Made by a program: the position numbers and the translations under genes. The notes under the pieces were generated by a model that saw nothing but the letters and a program-made list of their open reading frames with translations, was not told the DNA's origin and searched no databases. A DNA stretch of 64,000 nucleotides from Macrostomum hystrix (taxonomy: Eukaryota > Animalia > Platyhelminthes): NCBI GenBank assembly GCA_950097015.1, contig CATNEN010000001.1, positions 7,626,001 to 7,690,000 on the forward strand. Direction: 5' to 3'. The stretch's first letter is position 1; the number at the start of each line of letters is the position of its first letter. This document shows positions 8,752 to 57,200 of the stretch, piece by piece.

Positions 8752-8859
8752 TTTTTCAGGTGTTTTTTCTCTATTGTCATCCTGGTAAGCCTGTGCGAGG
8801 TCCTAGCTACACAATTGTTGGATTAAGCGTTCAGTGAGAATAGGATCAGATATACAGAA

Positions 8860-25432: not shown

Positions 25433-25552
25433 ATCAATAATTTCAATCTTCAGCTAAGTCGAAACAATTTTTCTTTAATTTTCAGCGAATAATTTCGCCC
25501 TACTTTACAAGCCTTTAATAAAGTTGAGCAACTAAAAGTACAAAGACTAGTG

Positions 25553-28814: not shown

Positions 28815-29405
28815 CATTATAGTCGGTAAACTCGGGCCCGCGGGCCGTATGCGGCCCTCAAAGCTCCCAAATCCGGCCCGCTGCCCCTTCCAACACCTTC
28901 AGTATCTTGTCTCATCTTTCCCTTATCTCATCTCTGTCTCTCATCTGGAGATAGAGTCTCATCTCTCCTGTGTCATCTCTCCTTTGTCCCATCTATCCCG
29001 TATCTCATCTCTCCCGTGTCTCATCCATCCGTGTTTCATCTATCCCTTATCTTATCTCTCCCCTGTCTCATCTCTTCCATGTCTCATCTCTCCCGTATCT
29101 CATCTCTCCCGTGTCTCATCTCTCCCGTGTCTCATCTCTTCCATGTCTCATCTCTCCCCTGTCTCATCTCTCCCGTGTCTCATCCATCCCATGTCTTATC
29201 TCTTCTCTATCTCTCCTCTCTCTCTAATCTGTAGATAGAGTGTCTCATCTCTTCCCTTTCTCATCTATCCCGTCTCATCTCTTCTCAGTCTTATCTCCCG
29301 CTGTCTTATCTATCCCCTTTCCCATATTCCTACAGTGAATGCTACCCGCTGTCGTATTTTAGGTTCTCTCCATGGCCCGCACGCTAATAAGTTTGCTGGC
29401 CACTG
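28815..29405. mobile_element. hAT (Charlie/Buster-type) MITE with an internal minisatellite
   Basis: Left end GTCGGTAAACTCGGGCCCGCGGGCCGTATGCGGCCC and right end GGCCCGC...AAGTTTGCTGGCCACTG are typical hAT MITE ends. Confidence 0.7.
28900..29330. repeat. Pyrimidine-rich minisatellite (CTCATCTCTCCCGTGT variants)
   Basis: Tandem imperfect units inside the hAT MITE. Confidence 0.9.
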
Positions 29406-33500: not shown

Positions 33501-33577
33501 CTCGCAGCTTGATTATTGTTAGCTTTGATTTGTATTTAAACAGTATATAACTTTTAACTGTAGAAATTTTAAAACTA

Positions 33578-34330
33578 TTTGATCCCCTAATCTCTTGTAG
33601 GTCAGTTCCCCTAATCTCTTGTACATTAGATCCCCTAATCTCTTGTAGATCAGTTCCCCTAATCTCTTGTAGGTCAGATCCTCTAATCTCTTGTAGGTCA
33701 GTTCCCCTAATCTCTTGTAGGTCAGTTCCCCTAATATCTTGTAGGTCAGATCCTCTAATCTCTTGTAGGTCAGTTCCCCTAATCTCTTGTAGGTCAGATC
33801 CCCTAATCTCTTGAAGGTATGATCCCCTCATCTCTTGTAGGTCAGTTCCCCTAATCTCTGGTAGGTCAGATCCCCTAATCTCTTCTAGGTCAGATCCTCT
33901 AATCTCTTCTAGGTCAGATCCCCTAATCTCTTCTAGGTCAGATCCCCTAATCTCTTTCAGGTCAGATCCCCTAATCTCTTTTAGGTCTGATCCCCTAATC
34001 TCTTTTAGGTCAGATCCTCTAATCTCTTGTAGGTCAGATCCTCTAATCTCTTCTAGGTCAGATCCCCTAATCTCTTTTAGGTCAGATCCCCTAATCTCTT
34101 GTAGGTCAGATCCCCTAATCTCTTGTAGGTCAGATCCCCTAATCTCTTTTAGGTCAGATCCCCTAATCTCTTCTAGGTCAGATCCCCTAATCTCTTTTAG
34201 GTCAGATCCCCTAATCTCTTCTAGGTCAGATCCCCTAATCTCTTTTAGGTCAGATCCCCTAATCTCTTCTAGGTCAGATCCCCTAATCTCTTTTAGGTCA
34301 GATCCCCTAATCTCTTTTAGGTCAGATCTA
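33578..34330. repeat. Minisatellite, 24-bp unit AGGTCAGATCCCCTAATCTCTTGT
   Basis: About 31 copies starting ~80 bp after the UFSP2 stop. Confidence 0.97.
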
Positions 34331-35260: not shown

Positions 35261-35956
35261 AGGCCTGTTTTCGTATAAGGTACAGTAACGAGATTTAAAA
35301 AAATCGCTCTTTTAGAAGAAAAATGGTTGTAACTTTCGATCTGTAACAATCATAGCAGAATATAAACTGCATTTAACAAGTCTCGTAGATCCATCTCTAA
35401 ATAATAATAATTGATTACACCTGCCCCAATTGGGCCAGATGTGCAGCCGACAGCACAGCCGCAGCTATTGCACGGCACATCTGAAGGCTGCGTTCGGCTG
35501 TTCAGTCCATGGACTGGGGGGACGCCACACTCACCCTCAATTATCCCAGCTAATGCTGGTACCCATTTAACAGCTTGATGAACTAAAGCAGTGCTGAGTT
35601 CAGTGTCTTGCTAAGGGACGCAAATTGTTCCAGTGGAGTCGGGTATCGAACCCCCGACCTTCAAGTAGTGAGTCCGACGCACTACGAGCGTACCACAACG
35701 CTTCAGCCTCCTACAAGGCCGCAATCTCTGAAACATAATTTAGAATCATTGTATGTACGAGGGGAACTTGCTAACATTTATGAGTACATTTATGAGTACA
35801 GTCACAAGTATCTCAAATCACGCATTGCTGCGACTTAATTAGGAGAGAACTAAACAGAATGAGGATGTACATAATCAGCATGTTTTTCTTTCCAAAATCT
35901 CGTATTAAACTTTTGCCCACTGAGTCGCTACCGCCTTTTTGGACGAAAACAGGCCT
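35261..35956. mobile_element. Kolobok-like MITE containing a SINE
   Basis: TIR AGGCCTGTTTTCGT...ACGAAAACAGGCCT, flanked by TTAA and TTCA. Confidence 0.6.
35400..35711 (-). mobile_element. CORE-type tRNA-SINE (family 1), full length
   Basis: Reverse complement of 63708-64000 with a (TTA)n tail. Confidence 0.9.
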
Positions 35957-36404: not shown

Positions 36405-37770
36405 ATGTGTGACCTGCAGAAGCTGAATGACGTCGCGGTGGCGAAGATCGATGCGTCCAGCTCACTGCTGAGCAGCGTGAGCTCTCGCCTGTGGAGCAAC
36501 CCGGAGCTGGCCCTGGAGGAGCGAATGGCGCACCAGATGCTGACGGAGGTGCTGGAGCAGGCGGGCTTCAGCGTGACTCGCCACTTTGTGCTGGAGACCG
36601 GATTCAAGGCCACATTCGGGTCGTCTCCGACTGCTCGGCCCCACGTGGCTGTGATGTGCGAGTTCGACGCCCTGCCTTCGATCGGACACGCGTGCGGCCA
36701 CAACCTGATCGCGGAGGTAGCGGTGGGCGCCGGAGTGGGCATCAAGGCCGCCATCGAGGCCGGAGCGGTCGGGAGAGTGACAGTGCTCGGCACACCGGCT
36801 GAGGAAGGCTACGGAGGCAAGATTGATATGATCAGGTCGGGCCAATATCGTAAAGCTTCGTTACTGTTAATAATACGCATTTAGCATAATGGGCCTATCG
36901 TTGATTTCTTATCAGATCCGGATTCTTTTCCGACGTTGACGTCGCAATGATGGCCCATCCGTTCAAGCTGACCGCCGTTAATATCGAAGCTCTCTGCAGG
37001 CAGTCGCTACGTGTCACCTTCACCGGCAAGGCGTCGCACGCCGCCGGCTCGCCATGGGAGGGCGTGAATGCTCTGGACGCTGCGGTTACGGCCTACCAGA
37101 GCGTGTCGAACCTGCGACAGCAGATGCGGCCCGAGTGGCGGGTCCACGGCATATTTAAGGAGGGCGGCCAGCGACCCAACATCATCCCGGAGCGGGCTGT
37201 GTTGGGTGAGGAGCTTTTAGAACTTGAATCTTTAACAAAACTTTGAATTGTGGGCATCCTGCCGTTGAGCACACGCCTAATATTTTCCTCGCAGAGTACT
37301 ACATCCGCTGTCCCACAGACAAGGAGGTGGCGGTATTGAGACGCAAAGTGGAGGCCTGCTTTAATGCAGCTGCCGCAGCCACTGGTTGCCAGTGCCAAGT
37401 CGAACAGTCGGCTCAGACCTATAGCAGCATGATCAACAACCGGCCAATGTTAGAACTGTTCCGCCACAACCTGAGCCATCTGCGGGTGCTCTTCGCGGAG
37501 TTCACTAACGAATGGTGCGGCTCAACGGACATGGGCAACGTGAGCTACGCTGTACCGTCAATTCATCCAATCTTCTCTGTGGGCGGCTGCGCTGAGAACC
37601 ACACCAGGGAGTTCACGGAGCTAGCTGGTCAGCCAGGCGCTCAGCCGCACGCTCTGGCTCAGGCCAAGGCTCTGGCCATGACCGGCGTCGACATCCTGAC
37701 TCAACCGGCTGAGCTGGAGCGAGTTCGGCTGAGCTTCGCTGCCGATCTGGAGATGTACAGAGCGGACTAG
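36405..37770 (+). CDS. PM20D2: PM20D2-like M20D amidohydrolase, copy 1; exons 36405-36835, 36916-37205, 37295-37770
   Basis: EFDALPSIGHACGHNL, GTPAEE, MAHP, GKASHAAGSPWEGVNALDA, GSTDMGNVS, NHT; intact frame. Confidence 0.92.
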
Positions 37771-38327
37771 CAGCCGTCAATGAATTCTAGAGCTCTAACA
37801 TTTCACAGGCCGATTGTTGAGTTTTGTTTTTTCTGCGAAATGTCTGAATTCGAAGTTAATCACTTCCAAAAAAGGAAATTGCTGCATAATTCCAGTTATG
37901 ATTGCTTGAAAGACTTCGATAAAAACTTGTACAATTTTATTTTTGAACGCTTAATTTATCCGGGTTTTAACACCACGTTCTTACCATTTCATCTCCGAAG
38001 ATTCTGCAATTATTACACATTTTATTATAAAAAACAATAGAACTAGCACTGCTGATATCTTATATATATAGTAATATAGGTATATAGGTATATATAGTGA
38101 TAGTTTAAACGAAAATGCGAGCCCTAAATTAAAACTTGAAAACCCGCATCAAGGTTCGACAAAAGTTTGAGCACCAGTTTCTTATAATCATTCGACGTGA
38201 ATAATTCGCATTCCTAATGAGATCCCCGCACTAAATGTCAACATTTCAAGAGTGAAGGTCACGTTTACACGAAAAATTACGTAAAACTATTGCGTAAGTG
38301 CCTTTCAATCGTCCTTTGCAGCTCTTA

Positions 38328-40317
38328 ATGGACACACAGAAGCTGAAGGACGTCGCGGTGGCGAAGATCGATGCGTCCAGCTCACTGCTGAGCAGCGTGA
38401 GCTCTCGCCTGTGGAGCAACCCGGAGCTGGCCCTGGAGGAGCGAATGGCGCACCAGATGCTGACGGAGGTGCTGGAGCAGGCGGGCTTCAGCGTGACTCG
38501 CCACTTTGTGCTGGAGACCGGATTCAAGGCCACATTCGGGTCGTCTCCGACTGCTCGGCCCCACGTGGCTGTGATGTGCGAGTTCGACGCCCTGCCTTCG
38601 ATCGGACACGCGTGCGGCCACAACCTGATCGCGGAGGTGGCGGTGGGCGCCGGACTGGGCATCAAGGCCGCCATCGAGGCCGGAGCGGTCGGGAGGGTGA
38701 CCGTGCTCGGCACACCGGCCGAGGAGGAGCACGGAGGCAAGGTGGACATGATCAGGTAAATTCTTGTCATCCTTCTGACAAAAATTTTTGTTCTTTGTCA
38801 AAATATCTGGTCATAATTGCCTGTAACTCATGTCTGCAGTGTTTATTTGTTGTTTTATTAGCTACAAAGGAATTTGTCAATTGTTTACACTGTGTAATGT
38901 AGATTATTTCCACTGGAGGATCGGACTTTATTGCGAAAAAAACGGGTTCACGACCAGCTCGTTATATTCTTTTGAATTTTGATTCTACACTGCATTTTAC
39001 ATCCCTGCAGTGCGGGCTTCTTCCGTGACGTAGACGTCGCAATGATGTCGCACCCGTACAAGCTGACGGTGGCTCGTGCGTCTGCACTCAGCATTTTCGC
39101 TTTCTTCGCCACCTTCACCGGCAAGGCGTCGCACGCCGCCGGGTCGCCCTGGGAGGGCGTGAATGCTCTGGACGCTGCGGTGACGGCCTACCAGAGCGTG
39201 TCGAACCTGCGACAGCAGATGCGGCCCGACTGGCGGGTCCACGGCATCTTTAAGGAGGGCGGTCAGCGACCCAACATCATCCCGGAGCGGGCTGTGCTGG
39301 GTGAGTGAGCTCAATACATTTGCAACTACTGGTTTAGTTTCATTTTCAATTTGCTGCACCCCAGATCCTCAGAACTAAAGCTCCACCCCAGATCCTCAGA
39401 ACTCTATCTCCACTCCAGATCCTCAGAACTCTATCTCCACTCCAGATCCTCAGAACTCTATCTCCACTCCAGATCCTCAGAGCTAAAGCTCCACTCCAGA
39501 TCCTCAGAACTCTATCTCCACTCCAGATCCTCAGAACTCTATCTCCACTCCAGATCCTCAGAACTCTATCTCCACTCCAGATCCTCAGAACTATAGCTCC
39601 ACTCCAGATCCTCAGCAGCTAGAGTTGACCTCAGATCCTCATGGCTCCACTCCAGATCCTCAGCAGCTAGAGTTGACCTCAGATCCTCATGGCTCCACTC
39701 CAGATCCTCAAAACTATAGCTCCACTCCAGATCCTCAGCAGCTAGAGTTGACCTCAGATCCTCATGCCTCCACTCTAGTATACTGAACGAAGTAGCACGA
39801 AGCAAATTTATTGATAAGATTTCTCATTGTTTTCCTTATCAACTCAGAGTTCTACTCTCGCGCCCCCACGGACAAAGAGCTAGACGTTTTGCGACTCAAA
39901 ATAGAAGCCTGCTGCCACGGAGCGGCTCAGGCCACCGGCTGTGAGTATCAGATCACACCGAACGGTCATTCGTTCAGCAACGTAGTGAACAATGAGCCAC
40001 TTATGCTGCTGTATACTAGCAACATGAAGCAACTCAAAGAATTTTTTTTGGATATTCTGCCCGACTCGTTCGGCTCAACCGACATGGGCAACGTGAGCTA
40101 CGCTGTGCCGTCCATCCATCCGATGTTCACAGTAGGTGGCCGCGCTGAGAACCACACCAGGGAGTTCACGGAGCTAGCTGGTCAGCCAGGCGCACAGCCG
40201 CACGCTCTGGCTCAGGCCAAGGCTCTGGCCATGACTGCCGTCGACATCCTGACTCAACCGGCTGAGCTGGAGAGAGTTCGGCTGAGCTTCGATGCGGATC
40301 TGGCCAGACTGAATTAA
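38328..40317 (+). CDS. PM20D2: PM20D2-like copy 2; exons 38328-38755, 39011-39300, 39848-40317
   Basis: Same motifs, intact splice phases. Confidence 0.92.
39352..39778. repeat. Minisatellite, 27-bp unit CTCCACTCCAGATCCTCAGAACTCTAT plus derived units
   Basis: Tandem copies in the last intron of copy 2. Confidence 0.95.
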
Positions 40318-40704
40318 CGAGTTGAAATTATGTTACTTTGACTAGAGTCTCAAGGCTGCAATGTGTAACGAATCGGATGGATACTGTTTTGATATATACA
40401 ATGCTGCTACCGTTGAAGCGCTCTTTTTTAACAAACAACTATTTTACTCCCATCCTCGTCAGTTAGAATCAAAGTTTGTAATTATCTTTCTCAGGTTGAG
40501 ACTATTATAAATTAAATGCTCGTAGGAGCTGAATAAATTTACAGTAAATTGATGCTGCTCTTCTGTGATTTAAATAACTAAAACATCGTTTGACATTATA
40601 TTTGCTTTCAAGTTATTTCATTGAAAGTTGCGAATAAAGCCAATCAAATGCAAATACAAACGCTCAATCGTTCTTTCATTTCAGAACTTCGTCAACAGCT
40701 CTTC

Positions 40705-41966
40705 ATGGACCCGCAGAAGCTGAAGGACGTCGCGGTGGCGAAGATCGATGCGTCCAGCTCACTGCTGAGCAGCGTGAGCTCTCGCCTGTGGAGCAACCCG
40801 GAGCTGGCCCTGGAGGAACGAATGGCGCACCAGATGCTGACGGAGGTGCTGGAGCAGGCGGGCTTCAGCGTGACTCGCCACTTTGTGCTGGAGACCGGAT
40901 TCAAGGCCACATTCGGGTCGTCTCCGACTGCTCGGCCCCACGTGGCTGTGATGTGCGAGTTCGACGCCCTGCCTTCGATCGGACACGCGTGCGGCCACAA
41001 CCTGATCGCGGAGGTAGCGGTGGGCGCCGGACTGGGCATCAAGGCCGCCATCGAGGCCGGGGCAGTCGGGAGAGTGACCGTGCTCGGCACACCGGCCGAG
41101 GAGGCTCACGGAGGCAAGATCGACATGATTGGGTCTGGCTTCTTTGATGACGTGGACGCTGCTCTGATGGCGCACCCAGACCGCATGACCACTGTGCACA
41201 GCGCGCACCTCAGTCGGATCAAGCTTTGCGCCACCTTCACCGGCAAGGCGTCGCACGCCGCCGGCTCGCCCTGGGAGGGCGTGAATGCTCTGGACGCTGC
41301 GGTGACGGCCTACCAGAGCATTTCGAATTTGCGACAGCAGATGCGGCCCGACTGGCGGGTCCACGGCATCTTCGTTGAAGGCGGTCAGCGACCCAACATC
41401 ATCCCGGAGCGTGCAGTTCTAGGTCTGCCGTCAATTTCGTTTGCGCTTTTCAAACGAAAATGAACTCTAAAAACCTGTATGTCTTTTTCCTTGCAGAGTA
41501 CAGCGTTCGAGCGTCGACCGACTCTGATACCAAGCTTCTTCGAACCAAGGTGGAGCGCTGCATGCAGGCGGCTGCGCTGGCCACGGGCTGCCACTGCACC
41601 GTATCGGAGCCGGATCCAGAGTACAAGAATGTGATCCCAAATCGAGGACTTGCCAGAGCGTACAGTGCCAACCTGCAGCAGCTGGGCATTGAGCACAGCC
41701 AGCTGTATCCTGAACCCACCGGCTCCACCGACATGGGCAACGTGAGCTACGCTGTGCCTTCCATCCACCCAATGTTCCGCATCGGTGGCGACGCTGCAAC
41801 GCACAGTGCCGGCTTCGCAACGCTTGCTGGAGCTCCGGAGGCGCAGCCGTTCGCTCTGGACCAAGCCAAGGCTCTGGCCATGACGGGCATCGACCTGTTG
41901 ACGGACGCTGCACTGTTGAAGCGCTGCTGGGAGACCTTCAAAGAGGACCTCAGCATCTACGGCTAG
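40705..41966 (+). CDS. PM20D2: PM20D2-like copy 3 (lacks intron 1); exons 40705-41422, 41497-41966
   Basis: Continuous ORF through KIDMIGSGFF; motifs intact. Confidence 0.92.
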
Positions 41967-42282
41967 AGCTGCTGGGAGACCTTCAAAGAGGACCTCAGCA
42001 TCTACGGCTAGAGCTGCTGGGAGACCTTCAAGAAAGACCTCAGCATCTACGGCTAGAGCTGCTGGGAGACCTTCAAAGAGGACCTCAGCATCTACGGCTA
42101 GAGCTGCTGTGAGACCTTCAAAGAGGACCTCAGCATATATGGCTAGAGCTGCTTTGAGACCTTCAAAGAGGACCTCAGCATATCTGGCTAGAGCTGCTGG
42201 GAGACCTTCAAAGAGGACCTCAGCATCTACGGCTAGAGCTGCTGGGAGACCATCAAGGAGGAGCTCAGCACTTGCGCCTAGT
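41923..42282 (+). repeat. 45-bp tandem repeat of the copy-3 coding end including its stop codon
   Basis: GCTGCTGGGAGACCTTCAAAGAGGACCTCAGCATCTACGGCTAGA x7 plus one diverged unit. Confidence 0.95.
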
Positions 42283-42865
42283 TCAACGATGTTCTATGGA
42301 TAGTATTGTATCTATTTTCATTCACTGATTTAACTGGTGGTATTGTTTTCCTTGTTATTGAGTCACTCACTGTTTGACGTGTTTTTCGTTAGTATTTTTT
42401 GCACTCGCTACGATTGCTACTTAGAGGTGCATTAGTTTTCAGACATTTTTTGCCGTCTTAATTTAGTTTTAGAAAGTGTTTCTTGTGCTTTTGTTTATTT
42501 TCCTTATATATTTTCGTTAAATTGTTTCTCTAGGTTCAAGTCCATTCAAATCCTACAAATTGTATATTGAAAAAATTTAGCCTAATGCCATGAATAAGTA
42601 GGCTATTTGAACTTATTGTTGACAACAATTGTCTTTTTCAACTGCACGTCTACTCTTATGTCATTAAACATGAATTAAGCATGATCCGGTTGTCTTATGG
42701 CATAATCTAGTTCTTATAGTTACTGCTGGATTAGCGAATTAAGATACATACATAAATTAGACGCATTAGGGCACACCTTAATATATGCTGACGCTTCAAA
42801 GTTATCTTCACTTTTTTATTGCGAGAAACTATTGCGTAAGTGTCTTTAACTGTTTGCAGCTCTTT

Positions 42866-44764
42866 ATGGACACGCAGAAGCTGAAGGACGTCGCGGTGGC
42901 GAAGATCGATGCGTCCAGCTCACTGCTGAGCAGCGTGAGCTCTCGCCTGTGGAGCAACCCGGAGCTGGCCCTGGAGGAGCGAATGGCGCACCAGATGCTG
43001 ACGGAGGTGCTGGAGCAGGCGGGCTTCAGCGTGACTCGCCACTTTGTGCTGGAGACCGGATTCAAGGCCACATTCGGATCGTCTCCGACTGCTCGGCCCC
43101 ACGTGGCTGTGATGTGCGAGTTCGACGCCCTGCCTTCGATCGGACATGCGTGCGGCCACAACCTTATCGCGGAGGTAGCGGTGGGCGCCGGAGTGGGCAT
43201 CAAGGCCGCCATCGAGGCCGGAGCGGTCGGGAGAGTGACCGTGCTCGGCACACCGGCCGAGGAGGCTCACGGAGGCAAAGTCGACATGATCAAGTACGTT
43301 CTTGACGACCATGTCATTTCTTTGAATTACTGTTAATGATTTGTTTCGCTTTTGGCAGCAGTTTCTACTCGCACTTGTATGCCTCGATGAATTATCATTA
43401 CTCTGGTGCGGTTTTTCAGAAACTCAAGGTCAAAGTGAGTTTGAAACATGAGTACATGAGTCTAGAAATGTTCTGCTTCAATTGAGTTTATTTTATTGGA
43501 TGCTTAAACAAACTATTTGGTATATTTTCCTGCGATAAGAAATCTTCGAAGACTGAGTAGTCTTGTGTTCTCAATCGAACCTGTAAATCTGTAAATTGAT
43601 GTCCCTGTGAGGAGTGCCGTGCCGAGAGACCGATGTATTGTGGTAGACGAAAAAGCCTAAAGCGAAGTAGGCTCTGAGCAATCGGTTATATTTGATATCT
43701 GGTGATGAACATGCAACGTGCACGTGATAGGCGCAGATGTACAATAATCGCTCGCAGTTGAACGCACTCTACGATATAACTCAGGGCTTATAGCTAACAC
43801 GACTGAACGAAAGCGCGCCCACTGGGGCCTGCAGTCCCGTCCATTGTTTATGTTCTGACTGTTTTGTTTCGATTCTGTTAACATAGCCAAGGCGTTCTAT
43901 TAGCGCATTATTCCTATTCTTGCCATTGCAGCTCAGGGTTTTTCAATGACGTCGACGCAGCGCTGATGGCACACCCAGACCGCATGACCACTGTGCACAG
44001 CGCGCACCTCAGCTGCTCGAACATCATCGTGACCTTCACCGGCAAGGCGTCGCACGCCGCCGGCTCTCCTTGGGATGGCGTGAATGCTGTGGACGCTGCG
44101 GTGACGGCCTACCAGAGCGTGTCGAACCTTCGGCAGCAGATGCGGCCTGACTGGCGCGTGCACGGCATCTTTAAGGAGGGCGGTCAGCGACCCAACATCA
44201 TCCCGGAACGCGCGGTACTGGGTAGAGTCACAGAACGGATTATCTTGCCTTTGTCCTTGAAAATTCTTTCACTAACTTCACTGAATTCTTTTAGAGTTCA
44301 TTACGCGAGCTACAACGGACACTGATTCGAGACTTCTTCGTACCAAGGTGGAGCGCTGCATGCAGGCGGCTGCGCTGGCCACGGGCTGCCACTGCACCGT
44401 ATCGGAGCTGGATCCAGAGTACAAGAATGTGATCCCAAATCGAGGACTGGCCGGAGCGTACAGTGCCAACCTGCAGCAGCTGGGCATTGAGCACAGCCAG
44501 CTGTATCCTGAACCCACCGGCTCCACCGACATGGGCAACGTGAGCTACGCTGTGCCTTCCATCCACCCAATGTTCCGCATCGGTGGCGACGCTGCAACGC
44601 ACAGTGCCGGCTTCGCAACGCTTGCTGGAGCTCCGGAGGCGCAGCCGTTCGCTCTGGACCAAGCCAAGGCTCTGGCCATGACGGGCATCGACCTGTTGAC
44701 GGACGCTGCACTGTTGAAGCGCTGCTGGGAGACCTTCAAAGAGGACCTCAGCATCTACGGCTAG
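42866..44764 (+). CDS. PM20D2: PM20D2-like copy 4; exons 42866-43293, 43932-44221, 44295-44764
   Basis: Motifs intact; last exon nearly identical to copy 3. Confidence 0.92.
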
Positions 44765-45557
44765 AGCTGCTATGAGACCTTCAAAGAGGACCTCAGCATC
44801 TACGGTTTGACGCGACTGTAGTGCATCATTTTCGTCTTTTAGTGTGTTTGCAAGGGATTTTCAGTGTTTATGTGTACTTCTCTGTTTTCGGCTCTCTTAG
44901 TTCTGATTGGATGTCTGTCTATGCGTTCGTTGTCTCTACTTCCGTTGCCTTTAGTTTACCCAACCCTTTTCCAGGTCTGAGCTGTCCTTATGTCTCTGCG
45001 GTTTTCTCTCCTCAGTCTTTGTTTATGCTCTATCTGTCCACCCCTCTTTTTCAGCGCGCTCAGACAACTATTTTCTTACCCATTTTATCTATTTAAGGGT
45101 CACACAATCATCAAATGACTCTTTTTTGTGGCAATATTGTGTCATGTTTAAGTAATTAGGGAATAATTGGATTTACAATCGTTTGTTTCGGCCTAATTTG
45201 ATGACACTGTAAAAGAGCCCTCAAATATGCTATTTTGAGGGCCTATCCATCATGCTCATGCCTAATTATTGTTAATTTGTCTCGCCTTGTCTAGCGACAA
45301 CGGTTTGACTTCGAGCTTGTGTTTTTCATTCAATTTAGCAAGACTTCAATTTATCACGACTGAATATCTGCTTCATTATAATCATGTTAACAAAAAATAT
45401 ATATCAACATTTAAGTAAGTGCGTTAAAAATAACTAATCCTAGGTGTAGATACGACAAGACAGAGTAAGCCACTGAAATCTAAAGTTTAGATAAAATTTC
45501 GCACGTAATTGTACCTTACATTACTTAAGTTTGTGGCAACCCAAACCTTTACAGCTC

Positions 45558-46955
45558 ATGGACCCACAGAAGCTGAAGGACGTCGCGGTGGCGAAGATCG
45601 AGACGTCCAGCTCACTGCTGAGCAGCGTGAGCTCTCGCCTGTGGAGCAACCCGGAGCTGGCCCTGGAGGAACGAATGGCGCACCAGATGCTGACGGAGGT
45701 GCTGGAGCAGGCGGGCTTCAGCGTGACTCGCCACTTTGTGCTGGAGACCGGATTCAAGGCCACATTCGGGTCGTCTCCGACTGCTCGGCCCCACGTGGCT
45801 GTGATGTGCGAGTTCGACGCCCTGCCTTCGATCGGACACGCGTGCGGCCACAACCTGATCGCGGAGGTGGCGGTGGGCGCCGGACTGGGCATCAAGGCCG
45901 CCATCGAGGCCGGAGCGGTCGGGAGAGTGACCGTGCTCGGCACACCGGCTGAGGAGACTGTGGGAGGAAAGATAAACATGATTAGGTAAATTGAGTAGTA
46001 ATCTTGTTGGTTCTGCTTTGAGAAAAGTCTTATTTAGTAACCCATCTTGCGTAACCCTTTCTTGTCTTCGTTCTGCTCATGTTGTATTCTATTTTTTGCA
46101 GCGCTGGATTCTTTGACGATGTGGACGTCGCAATGATGTCACACCCGTACAAGGTGACTCTGGCTCGCATTTTCTGCCTCAGCATGTGCGCTATCCGTGC
46201 CACCTTCTCCGGCAAGGCGTCGCACGCCGCCGGCTCGCCCTGGGAGGGCGTGAATGCTCTGGACGCTGCGGTGACGGCCTACCAGAGCGTGTCGAACCTG
46301 CGACAGCAGATGCGGCCCGAGTGGCGGGTCCATGGCATCTTCGTTGAAGGCGGTCAGCGGCCCAACATCATCCCGGAGAGGGCTGTGCTGGGTGTGTCTT
46401 TGTTGACTTTGAATTTCTGTGAAAGTTTTTAGTTACAAATTAGTTTAGTATATCATTTCACCGTGTTACTAACCAATGGCAGAGTTCTATGTGCGCACCC
46501 CCACTGACAAAGAACTGGCCATTCTACGTCGCAAAGTTGAAGCCTGCTTCCAAGCTGGGGCTCTGGCCACCGGATGCGACTGCCGGATCGAAATGACCGA
46601 GCCTACCATGAGCAACTTGGTGAACAATGAGTCCCTGATGCTGCTGTACACCAGCAACCTCAAGCACCTTGGAGTGTCCTTCATTGAGCTGGATTCAGAA
46701 CCGGGCGGCTCAACTGACATGGGCAACGTGAGCTACACTGTGCCGTCCATCCATCCGATGTTCACAGTAGGTGGTAGCGCCGAGAACCACACCAGGGAGT
46801 TCACGGAGCTAGCTGGTCAGCCAGGCGCTCAGCCGCACGCTCTGGCTCAGGCCAAGGCTCTGGCCATGACTGGCGTCGACATCCTGACTCAACCAGCTGA
46901 GCTGGAGCGAGTTCGGCTGAGCTTCTCTGCGGATCTGGCCAGACTCAGCGAGTAG
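45558..46955 (+). CDS. PM20D2: PM20D2-like copy 5; exons 45558-45985, 46102-46391, 46483-46955
   Basis: Motifs intact. Confidence 0.92.
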
Positions 46956-47588
46956 TTTGAGACCATAGCCGATGCTATTGTTAATGCCTGAATGTTAACA
47001 TTTTGTCACCTATAGTGCGCATCTTCGTACTAAAATCATGCTTTTCATTGTGGAGAATTGTATTATAATCACATGTGCAAGAGTCTAGTTTGTCTATGTC
47101 AATTAAGGTTTTACTGACATGTACGCTACGCAAAAACCTTCTTCCCGGTAATGGTTTCCTTCTCGGTTTGTCGATTGTTTCATTTTCTAATTCAATAGCG
47201 TCATAAATGCTTTCATAAATAATTCTTCTGCACCTGTGTCTTGACTGCATGAATATTTAATGATAAAGTCTAGTTTTTATGGTGAACTGATTTCTTCATG
47301 CTGTAAGTTTTACAATGATTTACAACTATGTGGGTTACAGTTAGGACTTGCCAAGCAAGCATTGTTAACTGATTTACAATTTCTTTATTAAACTTGAACT
47401 TTAAATTCCAACATTGAGTCTGCGACCAATTAAAGTTGATTCCAGCCTCACAAAGACCAAAAGCACCAATTGTTCACTTAGCGTCGTTTTTATCTTTCTC
47501 ATAATTATCTGAACAATAATATTTAATATGCTACGAATAATTCAATATTTATTCCATGCAATCTTTACTTGTGCAATTCCAGCAGCTC

Positions 47589-49310
47589 ATGGAGACGCAG
47601 AAGCTGAAAGACGTCGCGGTGGCGAAGATCGAGACGTCCAGCTCACTGCTGAGCAGCGTGAGCTCTCGCCTGTGGAGCAACCCGGAGCTGGCCCTGGAGG
47701 AGCGAATGGCGCACCAGATGCTGACGGAGGTGCTGGAGCAGGCGGGCTTCTGCGTGACTCGCCACTTTGTGCTGGAGACTGGATTCAAGGCCACATTCGG
47801 GTCGTCTCCGACTGCTCGGCCCCACGTGGCTGTGATGTGCGAGTTCGACGCCCTGCCTTCTATCGGACACGCGTGCGGCCACAACCTGATCGCGGAGGTG
47901 GCGGTGGGCGCCGGACTGGGCATCAAGGCCGCCATCGAGGCCGGAGCGGTCGGGAGAGTGACCGTGCTCGGCACACCGGCCGAGGAGGCTCACGGAGGCA
48001 AGATTGATATGATCAGGTACGTTTGCCGGAGTTCCGGATTTGTGAATATATTAACTGTTAATCAATTAATTGTAACAATTGTTTTCTCTTTTTCCTTAAT
48101 TTCGAAGGGCTGGATTCTTTATTGACATCGACGTCGCCATGATGGCCCATCCGCAGAGGCAGTCGGTGGCTCGCGCCTTCTCATTCAGCATGTGCGCCCT
48201 CCGTGCCACCTTCTCCGGCAAAGCGTCGCACGCCGCCGGATCGCCCTGGGAGGGCGTGAATGCTCTGGACGCTGCGGTGACGGCCTACCAGAGCGTGTCG
48301 AACCTGCGACAGCAGATGCGGCCCGACTGGCGGGTCCATGGCATCTTCGTTGATGGCGGTCAGCGGCCCAACATCATCCCGGAGCGGGCTGTGCTGGGTG
48401 ATTACTTATCCATTATTTTTTCCTTTGCTTTATCTTTGGTCGCTCTTAAATATATAATTGGCCCTCAACAAATGGGTCTGATGCTAAAGAAGCACTAGCA
48501 TCAGTGATGCGTAGCAATTCAGTAGCAAGGAGAATTCTAGGATTGGCAGAGTTGCAGCTAAAAATAGAACATGACTAAAAAGTGCAAGTAAACAGGCACA
48601 TGACCTTGACCACCACGTGACGTGAGGCATGCACCCCAGACAGACAGACAGGGAATCACGTGCTCGGGGCACACAAACAAAGGCACTAACCACCACGCAG
48701 GGTGAGAGACTGCTGCCGGCACGAATCCGACTGAGGACAAGACCTGCAAAGAGAAATTAATTTTGGAGCGAACAAATTGTTTTTATTGCTTCTTCATTTC
48801 GTAAAACTCGTAATTACAGTTTTATAAATATTTGCAGAGTACTATGTTCGCGCACCAACTGACAGAGAGGTTGGCCTTCTTAAAGCCAAAGTAGAAGCCT
48901 GTTTTAAAGCTGGCGCTTTGGCCACCGGCTGCGATTGTCATATTGAAATTACTGGCCAACCGTTCAGCAACTTGGTAAACAATGAGCCCCTGATGCTGCT
49001 GTACACCGGCAACCTGAAGCACCTTGGTGTGTCCTTCACTGAGCTGGATTCAGAACCGGGCGGCTCAACCGACATGGGCAACGTGAGCTACGTTGTGCCG
49101 TCCATCCATCCGATGTTCGGCATCGGCGGCAAGACGTCCAACCACACGCCAGAGTTTGCTGAACTAGCTGGTCGGCCAGGCGCACAGCCGCACGCTCTGG
49201 CTCAGGCCAAGGCCCTGGCCATGACTGCCGTCGACATCCTGAGTCAACCGGCTGAGCTGGAGCGAGTAAGGTTGAGCTTCTCTGCGGATCTGGCCAGACT
49301 CAGCGAGTAG
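47589..49310 (+). CDS. PM20D2: PM20D2-like copy 6; exons 47589-48016, 48108-48397, 48838-49310
   Basis: Motifs intact. Confidence 0.92.
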
Positions 49311-50197
49311 AGTATGAAACATCATTTCTTCAGGTGAAAGCCAAAACCAAATTTTCAATTTTTATCTGCTGGTGACCCATTTATTTAATTTAAATGCGCT
49401 ACGATAACACATAAAATTATCTACGTCAGTTATTGTTATTAACAAATTCACAGATCTTAGGAATGCAAAGCAATTGGAATTTAAGTGTCTTTTACATTGC
49501 CACAAATTGGTTTTAACGGTTTGAAAAATATTTTGTTCTTGTTACTTTAGGCTTTTAGTCTGACAACAATTATTAGAATTAGCTGGTATTAATTTTTTAC
49601 TTTGTCTTTGTTTTTCAATTTTGCTATATATTGATCAAAAAAATTGACACTTTTATTTTAACTTCAATTTCCTTTGTGATTCTCATTCCATATGTGTGAT
49701 TATAAAGGTTTCTATTGCGGTTAGTGTCGACATCTATATATTAAAAATTCTTGTTAATACAACGGCAAATGGTGTGCCTGCTTTATAACTGGGATCTAAA
49801 TGTTTCAACCTGATTAAAAAATGTTTTTCTTCTTTCGGAAATTTAAAGAAGAATTTCATTTTACTAAGATATATTTACAAGTATTGAACTAAGGAACTGG
49901 TCCTACTCGATTTAGCGACACACATCTACCCCTCAGACAGCCACACCTAAGCTAAGTCTTACATCCAGCCTCTAAGGCTCAAGAAATCTATTTGTCCGAG
50001 GCAGTTGGACTCGAGTCCAAATGCGCACTACCACGCAGCCATATCATGCCCTAATAGAGCATGCCATACTAAGTAAAAGAGTGTTTGTTGTTCGTATGCA
50101 GAACCAGCCCTTAGACCCATGGTACCAATCGAGTAAGTTATCTAATTACAAAGTGTCCATGGAATTAAGCTTCAACAGTTGTTTTTTTCAGCAGCTC

Positions 50198-51521
50198 ATG
50201 GACCCGCAGAAGCTGAAGGACGTCGCGGTGGCGAAGATCGATGCGTCCAGCTCACTGCTGAGCAGCGTGAGCTCTCGCCTGTGGAGCAACCCGGAGCTGG
50301 CCCTGGAGGAGCGAATGGCGCACCAGATGCTGACGGAGGTGCTGGAGCAGGCGGGCTTCTGCGTGACTCGCCACTTTGTGCTGGAGACCGGATTCAAGGC
50401 CACATTCGGGTCGTCTCCGACTGCTCGGCCCCACGTGGCTGTGATGTGCGAGTTCGACGCCCTGCCTTCGATCGGACACGCGTGCGGCCACAACCTGATC
50501 GCGGAGGTGGCGGTGGGCGCCGGACTGGGCATCAAGGCCGCCATCGAGGCCGGAGCGGTCGGGAGAGTGACCGTGCTCGGCACACCGGCTGAGGAGTGCT
50601 ACGGAGGCAAGATCGACTTCATAGACTCCGGCTTCTTCCAGGATGTCGATGTGGCACTGATGGCTCACCCATACAAGCTGACTGCCGTGCACGTTCCGCA
50701 CCTGAGCGTGGCTTTCATCCGTGCCACCTTCACCGGCAAGGCGTCGCACGCCGCCGGCTCGCCCTGGGAGGGCGTGAATGCTCTGGACGCTGCGGTGACG
50801 GCCTACCAGAGCGTGTCGAACCTGCGACAGCAGATGCGACCCGAGTGGCGGGTCCACGGAATCTTTAAGGAGGGCGGCCAGCGACCCAACATCATTCCTG
50901 AGCGGGCTGTGCTGGGTGAGTGAGCTCGGTGAACTAAGAGAATAGTCCTGAGCTCGGAGAATGTATTGTATAGGAAGGATATCAGAGATGAAAGGATATT
51001 TTATAGAAGTACGGGCGTACAGTACTTTTCTGATCCAATCTCTAGACTACTACATCCGCTGTCCGAACGATCGCGAACTGGCCACGCTGCGCGCACGCGT
51101 GGAAGCCTGCTTCCGCGCTGGCGCCCTCTCCGCCGGCTGTGAGTGCAGCATCGAGGACACTGGCAGGGCCTACAGCAGTGTCATCTGCAATGCGCCACTA
51201 GGTGCGGCCTACAGCACCAATTTATCGGCTTTGGGAGTGGATCACGTGAGCATCACCGAACTACCATCTGGCTCCACCGACATGGGCAACGTGAGCTACA
51301 CGGTGCCATCCATTCACCCAATGTTCTACATGGGCGGCGAGGCTCCAAATCATAGCGTTGAATTTACAAAACTAGTCGGTGCTACCGAGGCTCAGCCGTA
51401 CACGCTGAATCAGGCCAAGGCTTTGGCAATGACTGGGATTGACATCCTACTGAGCCATGAGCTGCTTGACAAATGCGCGGCTCAATTTCACGAGGATGTG
51501 GCTCGATTTTCGGCTACTTAA
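50198..51521 (+). CDS. PM20D2: PM20D2-like copy 7 (lacks intron 1); exons 50198-50915, 51046-51521
   Basis: Continuous ORF through KIDFIDSGFF; most divergent last exon; motifs intact. Confidence 0.92.
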
Positions 51522-52020
51522 GGAGCTAGACAAGATTCATTTACATCGCGTACTTTTTTTACTTGACTAAACGCTGCCTGGCCACAGATAGAACCCGATA
51601 ATTGCTACTGTTTCTAGGGTATTTTTTATATGATTTGATAATACAATAATATATAAAGTAAAGTACTTTATCATTTTAATGTCGAAGTATAAGCTAAGCT
51701 CGTGGAAAAACGTAGATTTGAAAAAATAATACAAGGACGTACATTTGCATTATTACGAACGCGTAGATTGTAATTTATTATATTTTTTTCTTTTTTTCTG
51801 AGCTTCTGCTGGCCTTGTAGTCCGAGCTTTAAACTTTATAGTCTCTAACTTAGGTCGTCACTGAATGTAATCTAGACGGAGCTGCTGCACCTTCATACTA
51901 TTATCGCCTCGTCTTTCAACCAAGTCATCAAGTCGACGTCGTCGGCACCTTTCAGCAGGTGCCACTGTAAATATGTGATTTAGTATATGTGACTAGTTAT
52001 ACTAGCCCCACTTAAAATCA

Positions 52021-52310
52021 TAATAATTGATTACCTGCCCTAATTTCGCCAGATGTGCAGCCGACAGCACAGCCGCAGCGGCGCATCTGAAGGCTGCGTA
52101 CAGCTGTTCAGTCCATGAACTTGGGGGGACGCCACACCCACCCTCAATAACTCCAGCTAATGCTGGTACCTATTTAACAGCTGGGTGAACTGAAGCAATG
52201 CAGAGTTAAGTGTTTTGCTAAAGGACACAATTTTTTTCATGGGAGTCGGGAAACGAACCACCGACCACAAGTCGTGAGTCCGAAGCTCTTACCACAAAGC
52301 TACCAGCTCC
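52021..52310 (-). mobile_element. CORE-type tRNA-SINE (family 1)
   Basis: Reverse complement of 63708-64000. Confidence 0.9.
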
Positions 52311-53339
52311 CATGTTTTAGCATCATACTCTCTCCATTAATAAAAAAATCACTGGAAAAGAGTTTAAATTTATTAGGCTCACAGATACCACTGTCTTTAA
52401 GTAAACAAGACTATCAAAATACACGCAACAGAATTATTTGACTTTGTTTCAAACAGGCATTCAATTAAGTAAGTGCAGCTTCAGTTGCAGGTGTCTGAGC
52501 TCGGTTTTAATTTATCATTAGCAATATTATATATATTTGCCAAGCTTGACGAAGTTTTCAATAGATTAAAATAATTATTTTTATTGTTGTAGCTCTCAAA
52601 CCAATTGAGACAAGTTCAAACCGAAAAGCACATACTGATTAATAAAAATAAGGATCGAAGAGAATAATAGTCAGAGTAGACGGAGAGCAGGCTAAATTGT
52701 CATTGTCCTCTAAAAAACACTAAATCCTAAGAAAAAAAGTAATTTTCGCTGAACACAATTTATATTTTCAAATCGATCATTAGTCAGCGAAAATTATTGC
52801 ACAATATGAAATGTCCGCATTTAGTTCAAATAGATGACACAGATGCTTATAGGAGACACAGCTAGAACAGACATGACAGATAGGGGAAAACTTACAAAGG
52901 AGTTGGGGGCAAGACTTATTCATCAATTTAGCCACACAATGTACAAAATGTTAAGCTGTAGCTGGTAAATGACACAAGTAATTGTTTTAATACTTTTTGT
53001 ACTGGTGGTCAGGGACTACACAAGTTCTCACTGACACTGACATACAATTTCATTGACTGACCAGGTGCTTCAGCGAATTGTCGAGCAGTCAAACGGTACA
53101 TGACACAAATAAGAAATAGATTAATTATAGCTCGTATATATTAGAGATGCGATAAAATATCAACAGAATTCTTTCGATGAAAGTCCTAACTTAAAGAAGC
53201 TGTGAAAAATGAAAAAATAAATATTATTTTCATTCTCGCAGATAGCTGCTTTAACTGAGTAAATTACTGATCTTTATTGCGTCACCGATAAAATAAGGGA
53301 TCAATTCAGGATTCATCAATTCATCAATTAACTGACAGA

Positions 53340-53712
53340 AACTAAGGGATTAACAAACTGAGAGTAAGGGATTAACTGACTGAGAGTACGGGATTAACTG
53401 ACTGAGAGTAAGGGATTAACTAACTGAGAGTAAGGGCATTGAATGACTGAGAGTAAGGGATTAACTGACTGAGAGTAAGGGATTAACTGACTGGGAGTAA
53501 GGGATTAACTGACTGAGAGTAAGGGATTAACTGACTGAGAGTAAGGGATTAACTGACTGAGAGTAAGGGATTAACTGACTGAGAGAAAGGGATTAACTAA
53601 CTGAGAGTAAGGGATTAACTAACTGGGATTAAGGGGATTAACTGTATAGAATTAAGGGGATTAAATGACTGAGAGTAAGGGATTAACTGACTGAGAGTAG
53701 GGATTAACTGAC
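53340..53712. repeat. Minisatellite, ~22-bp unit GGGATTAACTGACTGAGAGTAA
   Basis: About 17 tandem copies. Confidence 0.95.
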
Positions 53713-54289
53713 TGGCCGAAAGACTTAACCCGTTAGTTAAATATGATGAAACAAAAATAAAAAAGCTTAGAAAGTAGAATTTCAAGATTCCAAAATAATA
53801 GAAGCATAATCATTGCAAAATAGGGCAGCAAATAGAGCGATTGTTACAGTCGATCTTTTTAGAAACAAAGAGACAATCATGTGTGGCAAACACATGCGTA
53901 GAAAGTACGCAAGCTGAATTTTAAGAAAAAAAGTCCAGTAGCTACTTTAAGTAGCAAGTATTCTAAAATGGTATGCTTACATTGTTTTTTTCACAATTTT
54001 CCTCCAAATTCAACTTGAAACTTTAGAAAAAAGATAATAATTAGAGAAGCAAGGATAAGAGTTGGCTACACAAGACTAAGAGTGAACTAGACTAATGCAA
54101 ACGAAACAACAATATTGCGCGTGTAGGCACGCGTTCGAAGCGGGATGATAAAGCCCGATTTATAACTTACTGATTCGTCAATTAAAGGTCGTGTTTTTTT
54201 GGTAAAGTACCAGCTATCAGCAATGACGTCACGATAATTATTTTAACAACAAAACAAACAAACCTTCAAAGATGCCCGTAGCTGTGAAG

Positions 54290-57200
54290 TCATTCCGCTG
54301 TTTGCTGTTTGGCTGGGGAGTTATTAGCGGCGGCGGCAGCAGCAGCCGAGACAGTGACGGACACTGGCGCAGGAGCTGCGGGCAACACGCCGTGCGGTAT
54401 CTGCAGTATGGTGCTTTTCTTCAGCAGGCTAACAGGAAACTGTGCAGCCTGTCGCTGCAGATCCGTAGTCCGCTGAGCCGCCGCCAGGACTAGCACCGGC
54501 GGCGCCACGGAAGCTGCTGTCGAACTGCCAGTAGATCCAGAAGAAGCGGCGGCGGCGGCGGCGGCGGCAACAGCAGCAGCCTGAGCCGACACGACATGGT
54601 GGGTTGGTACAGCTCTCAGAATGGAAAACTTTCCAGATGGATGCGGTATACCCAACGGGGCTGCCGATACCGGAGTTGATAAGCCGGGAGAAGCGGCTAT
54701 TGTTGCTAGGCCGGCCGATTGAGTCGGCTGAATGACCGAAGCGGCTGCAACTGGGGTCTGGGCGGATTCCGACTGACCGGCAGTGCCCGGCGGCTGACCT
54801 CTTGTGGCCCATTTCGGCATGGCCACACTGTAGGGAAATAAGATCCTTTTGCTGCTGGGACTGACGGCTGCAGTGGGTGACAGACCGCCGACAGCGGCAG
54901 TGGCGGAGACGACAGCTCCTGGAGTTGTTGGAGCGGCGGCGGGAGCAACGGCAGCAGCGCCGACGGGTGCAGTGACAACTGCAGCGGTGCCCTCGACGGC
55001 GCTAACGCGACCGAGATGATCGATCAGTTTACCACGCGTCAATTCTAGTTCATCTTGACGCTTCTGTTCCATCTTCATCTTGACATTCATGTACTCTTTG
55101 AAGCTGACTTTGAATGGCAAATTAGCGGAGCCGGCAGCGGATGTCACAACGATGGACGACGAGTCGACGGGTGCCGTCGGCGGGGCGGCAGCGGCAGTGC
55201 TTGTGGTTGGATTGTCGAATATACTAGAGACCATCTTGTCGCTTGAAGTACGCAGAATTGGAGTGAAAGCTTTGCTCTGACTGACAGTGTAGGTCACTGA
55301 CTGAGTTAATAGAGGGCCTGCTTGGGTAAGCTGCTGCTGCTGCTGCTGTTGCTGCAGTTGTTGCTGCTGAAGCTGGATAGTCTTGAAACTATTCTTGATG
55401 ATTGCTTTTGTCTTAGGAAACTGTTGAACCATGCGTGCAACCACGGGCTGCTGAGCCGACATTGGCAAAGGCGGTGGGGGCGGCGGCGGCGGCGGTAGAG
55501 ACTGAGCTACTGGGCTTTCGGCCGAAGCCGCGTTGCCCGTTGATGTCGGAGCCGTTGTCGAAGTGACGCCGCTAGCGGCGGCAGCTGCGGCAGCGGCTAT
55601 AGCGGCGGCTTCAGCTCTGGCTTGTCGAAAGCCTGGACGCGATTCCAAGACACTATTAATAACTGACTCCAGATTTGGATGATTGCCTTCAATGAACAGG
55701 GTGTCACCTTCGGGCAGAACAATCATCGACTTTCGCTTTGGACCCTGACGCGGCTGTTCCTGCTCGCCAGGAACGCTGACGTGCACATTAAACACGCGAT
55801 TTGGCGTAGGCAGTCGGATAGTTGTCGACGACGGCTGCGGCTGCAGAGTCTGCTGAACAGATGGCGACTGCTGCGAAGGCGGAGGAGGTGGCGGTGGCGG
55901 CGGTGGCATAGGCGATCTAATAAGCGAGTTGCCAACGGACATTGGGGCCAGGCGACTCAATCCGGTGGTCGTCAGTGGGAGCCGTCCATGCGGATGCGGA
56001 CTCAGCGTGGTGCTCGCGCCAGTGGCACCTGCGTTAGGATGTCGCAGGACAATACCTAGTGTGGCTGGATACGCCGGACGAATCTGACTATGCCGCCCTT
56101 GCAGCACGGGTCCAATTGTGGAGACACTTGTGCCGCCGCTGAGTGGTACACCGCTTCCCCGAAGATGAACCTTCTGAGTTGGAAACGGCGACGCAGCGCT
56201 AACCGGCCTCAGATGCTGATGACGCTGCTGCTGATGCTGGTGACGCTGCATTTTTAACAGTTCGAAGGCTGTTGGCTGACGCGGCTGCTGCTGTTGCTGA
56301 GGCTGCTGCTGTACAGGCGGCTGCGGCGCCTCCTGTTGCAATGAGGCCACTGCAGCATCGGCTTCTGTCTCGTTGGTGGCGTTGCTGACGCCACCACCGG
56401 AGGAGGAGGAGGCGGCGGTGGCTGCTACGGCAGCGGCGGCATCGGCGGCCGCTTTCTCAATCCTGGCGTAACTAACAGCAGCTTTCACCTCTTCGGGTGT
56501 GAAATGGCCGACACCGCCGGATGTCAGGCCGTTGTTGGATAAGCCACTTCCGCCGCCGCTTAGTCCAGCGCCGGGATTCAACACAGTGGCCGAAGCTATC
56601 GCGGCCTCATCTTCTGGATCATTTTCAGCATCTGACGCATTTGAACTAGAGCTCTCCCAGTTGTCGGCGCTGTCTAACATTCGTCTAATACTGCGTATAA
56701 CATTAGATTTGCGTTGAACTAGTACGGCACAGAACACCAGGCCTGTACTGTTCACTAGCTTGTGCTTGACTGCGCGCAATTTAAACGAAGAATCGTCCAG
56801 TCGCTCCTGGAGAGTCTCCAAATCGCCTAGGCTGAGGTCGACAACGTTAACTATGAATTTATCGAACGGCATTGATCGTTGAATCTCAACGTCGCAGCTA
56901 AGATCGTTAGTTAGAGCCTGCAGCTCCCTAGTCAGACTGTGGGATAACGGCAGGGCGGCTGGCAAAGAGGAGCCGCTAGCGGAAGATGCAAAGATCTGCT
57001 TTCGCTCCGAGCGGATACCGCTGGGACCAGCGATGGAGGCGGAGGTTGAGCCAGGGATCTTTGGCACAGTCGATGATGAGTCCAATTCAATCGACTCAGT
57101 TTTAATCGCCTCGTCAGTGCTCTTAGCTGTTGCATCGTTGTTTGGGTTATCGCCTGCCTGTTCGTTGGCATTTCCGACCCTGGCACCCAAACTAGGCGCC

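Follow-up and report, generated by a model that had tools for sequence, protein, structure and literature searches.

What keeps long blocks of neighbouring genes nearly identical when the segments between those blocks differ from copy to copy? The question is raised by an array of seven genes in a 64,000-nucleotide (nt) stretch of the Macrostomum hystrix genome (contig CATNEN010000001.1, positions 7,626,001 to 7,690,000; hereafter the window). The array comprises seven intact, plus-strand M20D/PM20D2-like genes (c1 to c7) that encode 395-398 amino acids (aa) each; it opens with the ATG of c1 at 36405 and closes with the stop codon of c7 at 51521. We built the gene models from motif positions and splice signals. 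All introns are exact GT..AG introns, and the seven models contain no internal stops. A six-frame search of the whole 220-Mb genome found no PM20D2 copy outside the array, which is the only PM20D2 locus of the genome. We consider it likely that the locus consists of old paralogs subject to short-tract gene conversion, with one shared catalytic scaffold carrying seven stable loop sets.

Divergence is distributed unevenly along the genes. Nei-Gojobori counts on a codon alignment of the seven joined coding sequences (CDSs) gave synonymous (pS) and nonsynonymous (pN) divergences of 0.051 and 0.011 in segment A (codons 1-134), 0.63 and 0.28 in segment B (codons 135-178), 0.225 and 0.03 in segment C (codons 179-241), 0.65 and 0.38 in segment D (codons 242-315), 0.33 and 0.02 in segment E (codons 316-334), and 0.49 and 0.26 in segment F (codon 335 to the end). 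Synonymous divergence thus differs 12-fold between A and B/D. On the plus strand of c3, block A spans 40705-41103 (codons 1-133, from the start to GTPAEE). Segment B follows at 41104-41235 (codons 134-177) and contains the two residues after EE, GGK, the HP ligand and an 18-residue copy-specific patch leading into the lid domain. Block C (41236-41422, codons 178-240, TFTGKASHAAG..ERAVL) is the first half of the M20 lid/dimerisation domain and ends at the exon 2 donor. Segment D (41497-41720, codons 240-314) begins with exon 3, ends directly before GSTD and includes Y282 of c3.

Block A lies at the 5' end of every copy, starting from a CAG acceptor 6-9 nt upstream of the ATG. Only 22 of its 402 nt are polymorphic, and pairwise identity is 95.5-98.8% (blastn of the window against itself). 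Block C has 39 polymorphic sites in 189 nt and 88-96% identity between all copies (blastn), with near-identity at synonymous sites confined to its first ~100 nt. The initial annotation of this locus had described both blocks as almost identical even at synonymous sites, which is accurate for block A and overstated for block C beyond those first ~100 nt. Its expectation of non-uniform synonymous divergence along the genes agrees with pS values of 0.05 (A) and 0.23 (C) against 0.63-0.65 (B and D). Among columns with an invariant amino acid, the codon varies synonymously in 13 of 121 columns in A and in 22 of 24 in B and D together (Fisher p = 5.6e-15). Orthologs vary in the N-terminal 30 residues of block A, which are invariant in the array, so the constancy of this block stems from conversion and not from constraint. 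Codons ~339-396 form a further block; its homogenisation is partial and limited to c1/c2/c5(/c6), and c3 and c4 have 100% identity there. GC content at third codon positions (GC3) is 0.84 in the homogenised blocks versus 0.68 elsewhere (p = 1e-16), a difference that is compatible with GC-biased conversion without being diagnostic of it.

The boundaries between segments are step-like and show no gradient. In the nucleotide alignment each of them lies at one codon position common to the seven copies (after EE, before TFxGK and at the end of exon 2), in agreement with the abrupt loss of identity at common positions that had been reported from the sequence. Introns and spacers are unrelated across the array, as also described before, except for 43 nt upstream of c2 and c4 and the 3' flank of c3 and c4. 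The second introns of c3 and c4 are 61% alike, and arbitrary intron pairs reach 43-55%. With flanks and introns unrelated, the shared blocks point to short-tract non-reciprocal copying and not to re-duplication. The copy-specific residues listed in the initial annotation are all exact in our gene models: the pairs after EE (GY, EH, AH, AH, TV, AH and CY in c1 to c7), the seven 18-residue strings after HP, and the triplets before GSTD (EWC, DSF, EPT, EPT, EPG, EPG and LPS). In c1, for example, GY follows EE and the patch after HP reads FKLTAVNIEALCRQSLRV.

We then compared the array, at the protein level, with two proteins of Macrostomum lignano (P0001 and P0002). In block A, cross-species identity is 107-111 of 134 residues for every pair, orthologous or not; within species it is 97% among the array copies and 128/134 between P0001 and P0002. 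In the 18-residue patch after HP, c3 and c4 match P0001, and c2 matches P0002, at 12-15 of 18 positions, versus 3-8 of 18 for non-orthologs. Phylogenetic trees of A and C placed the two M. lignano proteins as sisters (support 100/100) and the seven copies in a cluster of near-zero branch length. The tree of segment D grouped c3 and c4 with P0001 (100/99) and c2 with P0002 (84/87), the protein to which c2 is nearest in its variable parts. The approximately unbiased (AU) test rejected species monophyly for B, D and F combined (p = 1.8e-4 and 1.9e-8) and rejected the orthology groupings for A and C combined (p = 5e-7 and 2e-26). Constant blocks group by species and variable segments by orthology, which argues for old paralogs with ongoing, exon-limited gene conversion. 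By these protein comparisons, the array paralogs are older than the split from M. lignano, and A and C have been homogenised within each lineage since then. The proposal that gene conversion keeps the scaffold uniform is strongly supported by this difference in grouping between segments, with AU tests significant both ways.

Traces of exchange are also present within the array. Polymorphic sites of block A give incompatible groupings ({c5,c6}, {c6,c7}, {c1,c4} and {c1,c5,c7}), which indicates exchange within the block. A Sawyer-type runs test detected a c3-c4 tract over codons 294-396 (a run of 185 concordant polymorphic sites, global p < 0.0005), and the last 308 coding nt of c4 equal those of c3. 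The same test found a shared c1-c5 tract at codons 341-368 (p = 0.0175). It detects only these pair-specific 3' tracts and is blind to block A, where almost nothing is polymorphic.

We propose that non-reciprocal, ectopic, short-tract gene conversion between neighbours overwrites those parts of the genes that are still alike enough to pair. In all seven copies it would act on exon 1, between the trans-splice acceptor and the catalytic EE, and more weakly on the first half of the lid domain. On the C-terminal third it would act within the subsets c1/c2/c5/c6 and c3/c4. Tracts should end where homology ends. At two boundaries this would be non-homologous outron or intron DNA, and at the other two the strongly diverged, copy-specific loop codons, where heteroduplex rejection and purifying selection against losing a copy's own loop may stop them.

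Other origins of the pattern were ruled out. Unrelated introns and spacers dismiss a recent segmental duplication. Recent duplication with fast adaptive change of the loops is contradicted by the saturated loop pS, the unrelated introns and the grouping of the loops with their M. lignano orthologs. An overlapping functional element holding the synonymous sites of block A is contradicted by the 19% difference of the block A protein between species. Nothing points to a dedicated diversity-generating mechanism in the array. One local replacement was seen between the closest relatives. After HP, c3 and c4 share 36 nt with one difference, and then 12 of 18 nt differ (RIKLCA vs CSNIIV) directly before the identical block C. 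This six-codon stretch is at 41215-41232 in c3 and at 44014-44031 in c4, where it resembles that of P0001 (LSSIEV). Thus, c3 carries a replaced six-codon micro-patch, with no obvious donor within the array.

Two introns interrupt five of the copies: the first, in phase 2, follows GGK.DMI, and the second, in phase 1, follows ERAVL. The five are c1 (36405-37770; exons 36405-36835, 36916-37205 and 37295-37770; 398 aa), c2 (38328-40317; exons 38328-38755, 39011-39300 and 39848-40317; 395 aa), c4 (42866-44764; exons 42866-43293, 43932-44221 and 44295-44764; 395 aa), c5 (45558-46955; exons 45558-45985, 46102-46391 and 46483-46955; 396 aa), with a 3' untranslated region (UTR) reaching a poly(A) site at 47462, and c6 (47583-49310; exons 47589-48016, 48108-48397 and 48838-49310; 396 aa), with a spliced-leader (SL) acceptor CAG at 47580-47582. 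Intron 1 is absent from c3 (40705-41966; exons 40705-41422, in which exons 1 and 2 are fused, and 41497-41966; 395 aa) and from c7 (50192-51521; SL acceptor CAG at 50189-50191; exons 50198-50915 and 51046-51521; 397 aa). All seven are on the plus strand. The closest relative of c3, c4, carries a 638-nt intron 1, and the corresponding positions 41110-41160 of c3 and 50603-50650 of c7 are without an intron. This pattern reflects either two independent losses or a loss followed by regain via conversion.

Read-derived contigs support the gene models and their expression. We mapped Logan contigs of DNA run X1 and of runs X2, X3 and X4 (the latter three from two studies) to 45530-51525 (c5 to c7). 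Contigs of X2, X3 and X4 skip exactly all five predicted introns of these genes, which identifies the three runs as RNA and shows expression of c5, c6 and c7. For c5, both introns are skipped in all three runs and a poly(A) loose end follows 47462. For c6, intron 2 is confirmed in all three runs and intron 1 in X3 and X4; X3 also shows a 23-nt leader ahead of 47582. The c7 intron is confirmed in X2 and X4, and a 22-nt leader, as in c6, precedes 50191 in X4. A loose-end contig of X2 carries the c3-specific patch, so c3 is transcribed too. X2 is labelled organism B and comes from the same study as organism-A runs; its spliced contigs are at least 99% identical to the window, 3' UTRs included. 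The label could reflect a mix-up, cross-contamination or a very close taxon.

The 22-23-nt leader of the c6 and c7 contigs was not found anywhere in the window, and these two genes receive a spliced leader by trans-splicing at the CAG 6 nt upstream of the ATG. The leader ends in ..TTGCAT and is joined at this CAG in both genes (47580-47591 in c6, 50189-50200 in c7). Flatworm spliced leaders are reported to end in AUG. If this leader does so, that AUG is in frame (ATG CAG CTC ATG), and the protein may begin three residues earlier. The putative acceptors of c2 to c5 have in-frame spacings of 3, 6 or 9 nt. c1 is without this acceptor, and a CAG within its first codons could serve. The c5 poly(A) site lies 120 nt upstream of the c6 trans-splice acceptor (47462-47582), an operon-like spacing, and neighbouring copies might be co-transcribed and resolved by SL trans-splicing.

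Several observations weigh against conversion between old paralogs, or against selection as the force that maintains their loops. Full orthology is covered for c2, c3 and c4 only, and the grouping of c2 with P0002 is moderate (84/87), with 49% identity in segment D. Logan contigs pop paralog bubbles, which leaves the 22 copy-specific single-nucleotide polymorphisms (SNPs) of block A known from the assembly alone, and at some copy-specific sites (45671 and 50360) the DNA and RNA contigs show the majority letter. Block identity produced by assembly collapse, or by short-read polishing toward a majority consensus, is nevertheless extremely improbable: collapse cannot yield seven complete copies whose in-register variable segments, introns and spacers are all distinct. 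Mean k-mer depth in DNA run X1 is 421-632 on block A unitigs versus 73-120 on unique parts, a ratio which indicates that about 5-6 copies share block A 31-mers in the raw data. RNA contigs of two studies match at 99% or more, and an equal mosaic is present at the protein level in the independent M. lignano annotation. The array data also fit DNA-mediated and complementary DNA (cDNA)-mediated copying alike. A donor made by reverse transcription of spliced mRNA would explain the exon limits and the missing intron 1, as the start of block A and the end of block C coincide exactly with the trans-splice acceptor and the exon 2 donor, intron 1 is missing from two copies, and c3 and c4 share 308 identical nt in exon 3 yet are only 61% alike in intron 2. 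However, no spliced-leader sequence occurs upstream of any copy or anywhere in the window, and the A-to-B and B-to-C boundaries fall within exons. No intron has homogenised sequence on both sides, so the exon limitation does not discriminate between donors. The intron-1 site itself lies in a variable segment (pS 0.62 between c3 and c7), so any cDNA acting there would be the gene's own. We regard a processed-transcript donor as very unlikely and retain conversion between neighbouring old paralogs as the preferred explanation.

The initial annotation went further and held that selection protects divergent specificity loops. Between orthologs, the patch after HP is as conserved (12-15 of 18) as the scaffold is between species (81%), which suggests constraint on each copy's own loop, and the B-to-C boundary is a step inside an exon, which favours selection on the loops. 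The intact catalytic residues, the replacement of the Gly-Gly pair after EE and the residues found at the equivalent of human Tyr314 count on the same side. A loop sequence of its own has been retained by each paralog next to the metal ligands, and different preferences for dipeptides or N-acyl amino acids would probably follow from these loop sets. The claim is thus supported indirectly and in part, and the counts give no sign of positive selection at the ligand-adjacent sites. The pN/pS ratio in the ligand-adjacent patches is 0.63-0.84 and never exceeds 1 (Nei-Gojobori, a crude count over six pairs with dS saturated for most). In the other variable columns it is lower, at 0.24-0.68 (0.24-0.47 in the five less diverged pairs). 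The description of the segments as hypervariable has to be dropped, as the loops are old and stable and group with their M. lignano orthologs. Moreover, the segments that vary in the array are those that vary family-wide. Entropy across 112 orthologs is 1.7-2.2 bits in B, D and F versus 0.8-1.1 bits in A, C and E, and it correlates with entropy in the array (Spearman rho 0.62). Two of the four block boundaries are at exon edges beside non-homologous DNA, which is enough alone to stop a tract. The family-wide variability, the near-neutral patch pN/pS and the two exon-edge boundaries would all be expected if B, D and F were weakly constrained and had simply drifted past the pairing threshold, leaving loops without copy-specific function and an array that is largely redundant dosage. 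We find such neutral escape from conversion rather unlikely. Unconstrained sequence should diverge more than the scaffold, which differs by 19%, yet the patch is retained at 12-15 of 18 positions in orthologs versus 3-8 of 18 in non-orthologs. The B-to-C boundary is a step and not a gradient, all catalytic residues are present in the seven copies, and at least four copies are transcribed. That the array is a selected constant/variable repertoire, with distinct specificities arising from stable ligand-side loops and the equivalent of human Tyr314, and with boundaries held by selection and not only by homology loss, so that seven pockets would share a single co-adapted catalytic scaffold, is a possibility that we put forward tentatively and regard as less likely than not.

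We searched databases and structures exon by exon and predicted the fold from P0001. Exons 1-2 of c3 alone scored 156.5 bits against TIGR01891 (M20D amidohydrolase; cut-off 153.75), and full-length P0001 and P0002 scored 204 and 208 bits. PF01546 (Peptidase_M20) and PF07687 (M20_dimer) are above the gathering score in both M. lignano proteins. M20_dimer is also above the cut-off in the exon 1-2 pieces of c3 and c7, Peptidase_M20 is slightly under it in the c3 fragment (22.6 vs 24.6), and the c7 exon 1-2 piece gave no Peptidase_M20 match. The closest database relatives are the M. lignano pair, at 83% and 80% identity; next come proteins of molluscs and echinoderms named PM20D2 or Xaa-Arg dipeptidase-like (53-63%). 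The best PDB match is human PM20D2 (E = 2.6e-63 for c3 exons 1-2 and 4.2e-31 for the second piece). The AlphaFold model of P0001 (predicted local distance difference test, pLDDT, 94) aligns with human PM20D2 7yh4 at a template modelling (TM) score of 0.93 and 47% identity (Foldseek). Judged by sequence and predicted fold, the array genes are M20D amidohydrolases of the PM20D2 type, with predicted enzyme activity. Human PM20D2 (7yh4, 8zei, 8xzc and 8zel) has the same M20D fold with catalytic and lid domains, as compared via the P0001 model, and the motifs HACGHN, PAEE, HP, GKASH, GSTD and NH are common to it and the array. Mammalian PM20D2 is single-copy, whereas the flatworm array has seven tandem copies with homogenised blocks. 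Staphylococcus aureus HmrA (3ram) and bacterial AbgB belong to the same TIGR01891 subfamily, whose model matches c3 exons 1-2 and the M. lignano proteins at 156-208 bits; the HmrA match has E = 1e-39 and a TM score of 0.87-0.88. These bacterial proteins differ in their ~32% identity and are not known from arrays of this kind. Human PM20D2 is described as a beta-alanyl-lysine / Xaa-Arg dipeptidase (Veiga-da-Cunha et al. 2014, PMC4094082, as cited in PMC13311154).

The active-site residues are preserved throughout the array. The Cys and His of HACGHN, the Glu-Glu pair, the His of HP and the C-terminal His are present in all seven copies, and all ORFs are intact, in line with the earlier statement that the CGH, EE, HP and last His motifs are kept and no copy is broken. 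In an alignment of 61 homologues, the columns which we take, from family knowledge (ILL2 and YxeP), to hold the metal ligands and the general base are either invariant or conserved to 90% or more. The two positions after EE differ: 68-79% of orthologs have Gly-Gly there, and the array copies have GY, EH, AH, AH, TV, AH and CY instead. The column of human Tyr314, mapped with a numbering offset of 18 inferred from chain length, reads Y, F, Y, Y, M, F and Y in c1 to c7 (Y282 in c3), and Y and N in M. lignano. Tyr314 was mutated to Phe by the depositors of 8xzc and 8zel; our literature search found no paper on PM20D2 crystal structures.

Partial concerted evolution is familiar from tandem families such as the MHC (major histocompatibility complex) genes. 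The variable exons of protocadherins reportedly show mosaic concerted evolution, as Noonan et al. are said to have described in 2004, and the theory of escape from conversion reportedly goes back to Walsh in 1987 and to Teshima and Innan in 2004. The array is a case of mosaic concerted evolution, which is well described in tandem families, and involves no new mechanism. As in protocadherin and MHC genes, part of each paralog is homogenised, the rest is divergent and groups by orthology, the boundaries are sharp, and converted tracts have higher GC. Unlike those genes, the array encodes a metabolic metallopeptidase and not a recognition molecule. The contrast here is unusually clean (pS 0.05 vs 0.65), and pN/pS below 1 gives no signal of diversifying selection. 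With its 12-fold synonymous step, codon-sharp boundaries and reciprocal phylogenetic incongruence with a second species, the locus is a natural case of textbook quality, and it occurs in an enzyme family with a single copy in mammals. If the loop sets differ in substrate preference, the array would show conversion and specialisation coexisting in one enzyme and would offer seven natural loop swaps, all on one scaffold, with which PM20D2 specificity could be mapped. If the selected repertoire were real, it would be a metabolic counterpart of the constant/variable organisation of recognition gene clusters.

The surrounding sequence is repeat-rich. A 45-nt tandem repeat (7.7 copies, 93%; 41923-42270) starts in the last 44 nt of the c3 CDS; each unit repeats the C-terminal codons and the TAG stop of c3, and c4 has ~2 units. 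An interspersed repeat of ~280 nt, 81-92% alike between copies, is found at 35399-35684, 52015-52303, 63713-64000 (inverted), 30763-30997 and 26006-26139. Two same-orientation copies bracket the seven-gene array, and no tRNA gene was called in the repeat copies or elsewhere in the window. Minisatellite arrays of 0.2-1 kb are unusually frequent in the window (300-670, 1790-2654, 4350-4576, 6500-6948, 7209-8281, 8835-9290, 26148-26854, 28907-29325, 30407-30759, 31431-32143, 32520-33094, 33577-34328, 39353-39775, 53327-53715 and 58664-59643), and one of them, with a 27-nt unit, lies inside intron 2 of c2.

Functional annotation of the neighbouring sequence gave little. Pfam returned nothing above cut-off in eight neighbouring long open reading frames (ORFs). 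The minus strand has an uninterrupted 1151-aa ORF (54290-57745) with a high content of A, S, Q and P, for which Pfam gave no match. A COX5B-like ORF on the plus strand (25550-26014) is weak: it scores 29.7 bits against a cut-off of 31. The long antisense ORFs that cross block A were set aside as what GC-rich coding sequence gives. Finally, a 155-aa protein from a Logan contig (P0020) is a block A fragment that is 95% identical to c3, with substitutions of its own (DIAAAKVEASSELL and GLGLK) and a c4-like upstream LQLFMD. Its source is probably a third Macrostomum taxon, in which the homogenised block would have a version of its own.

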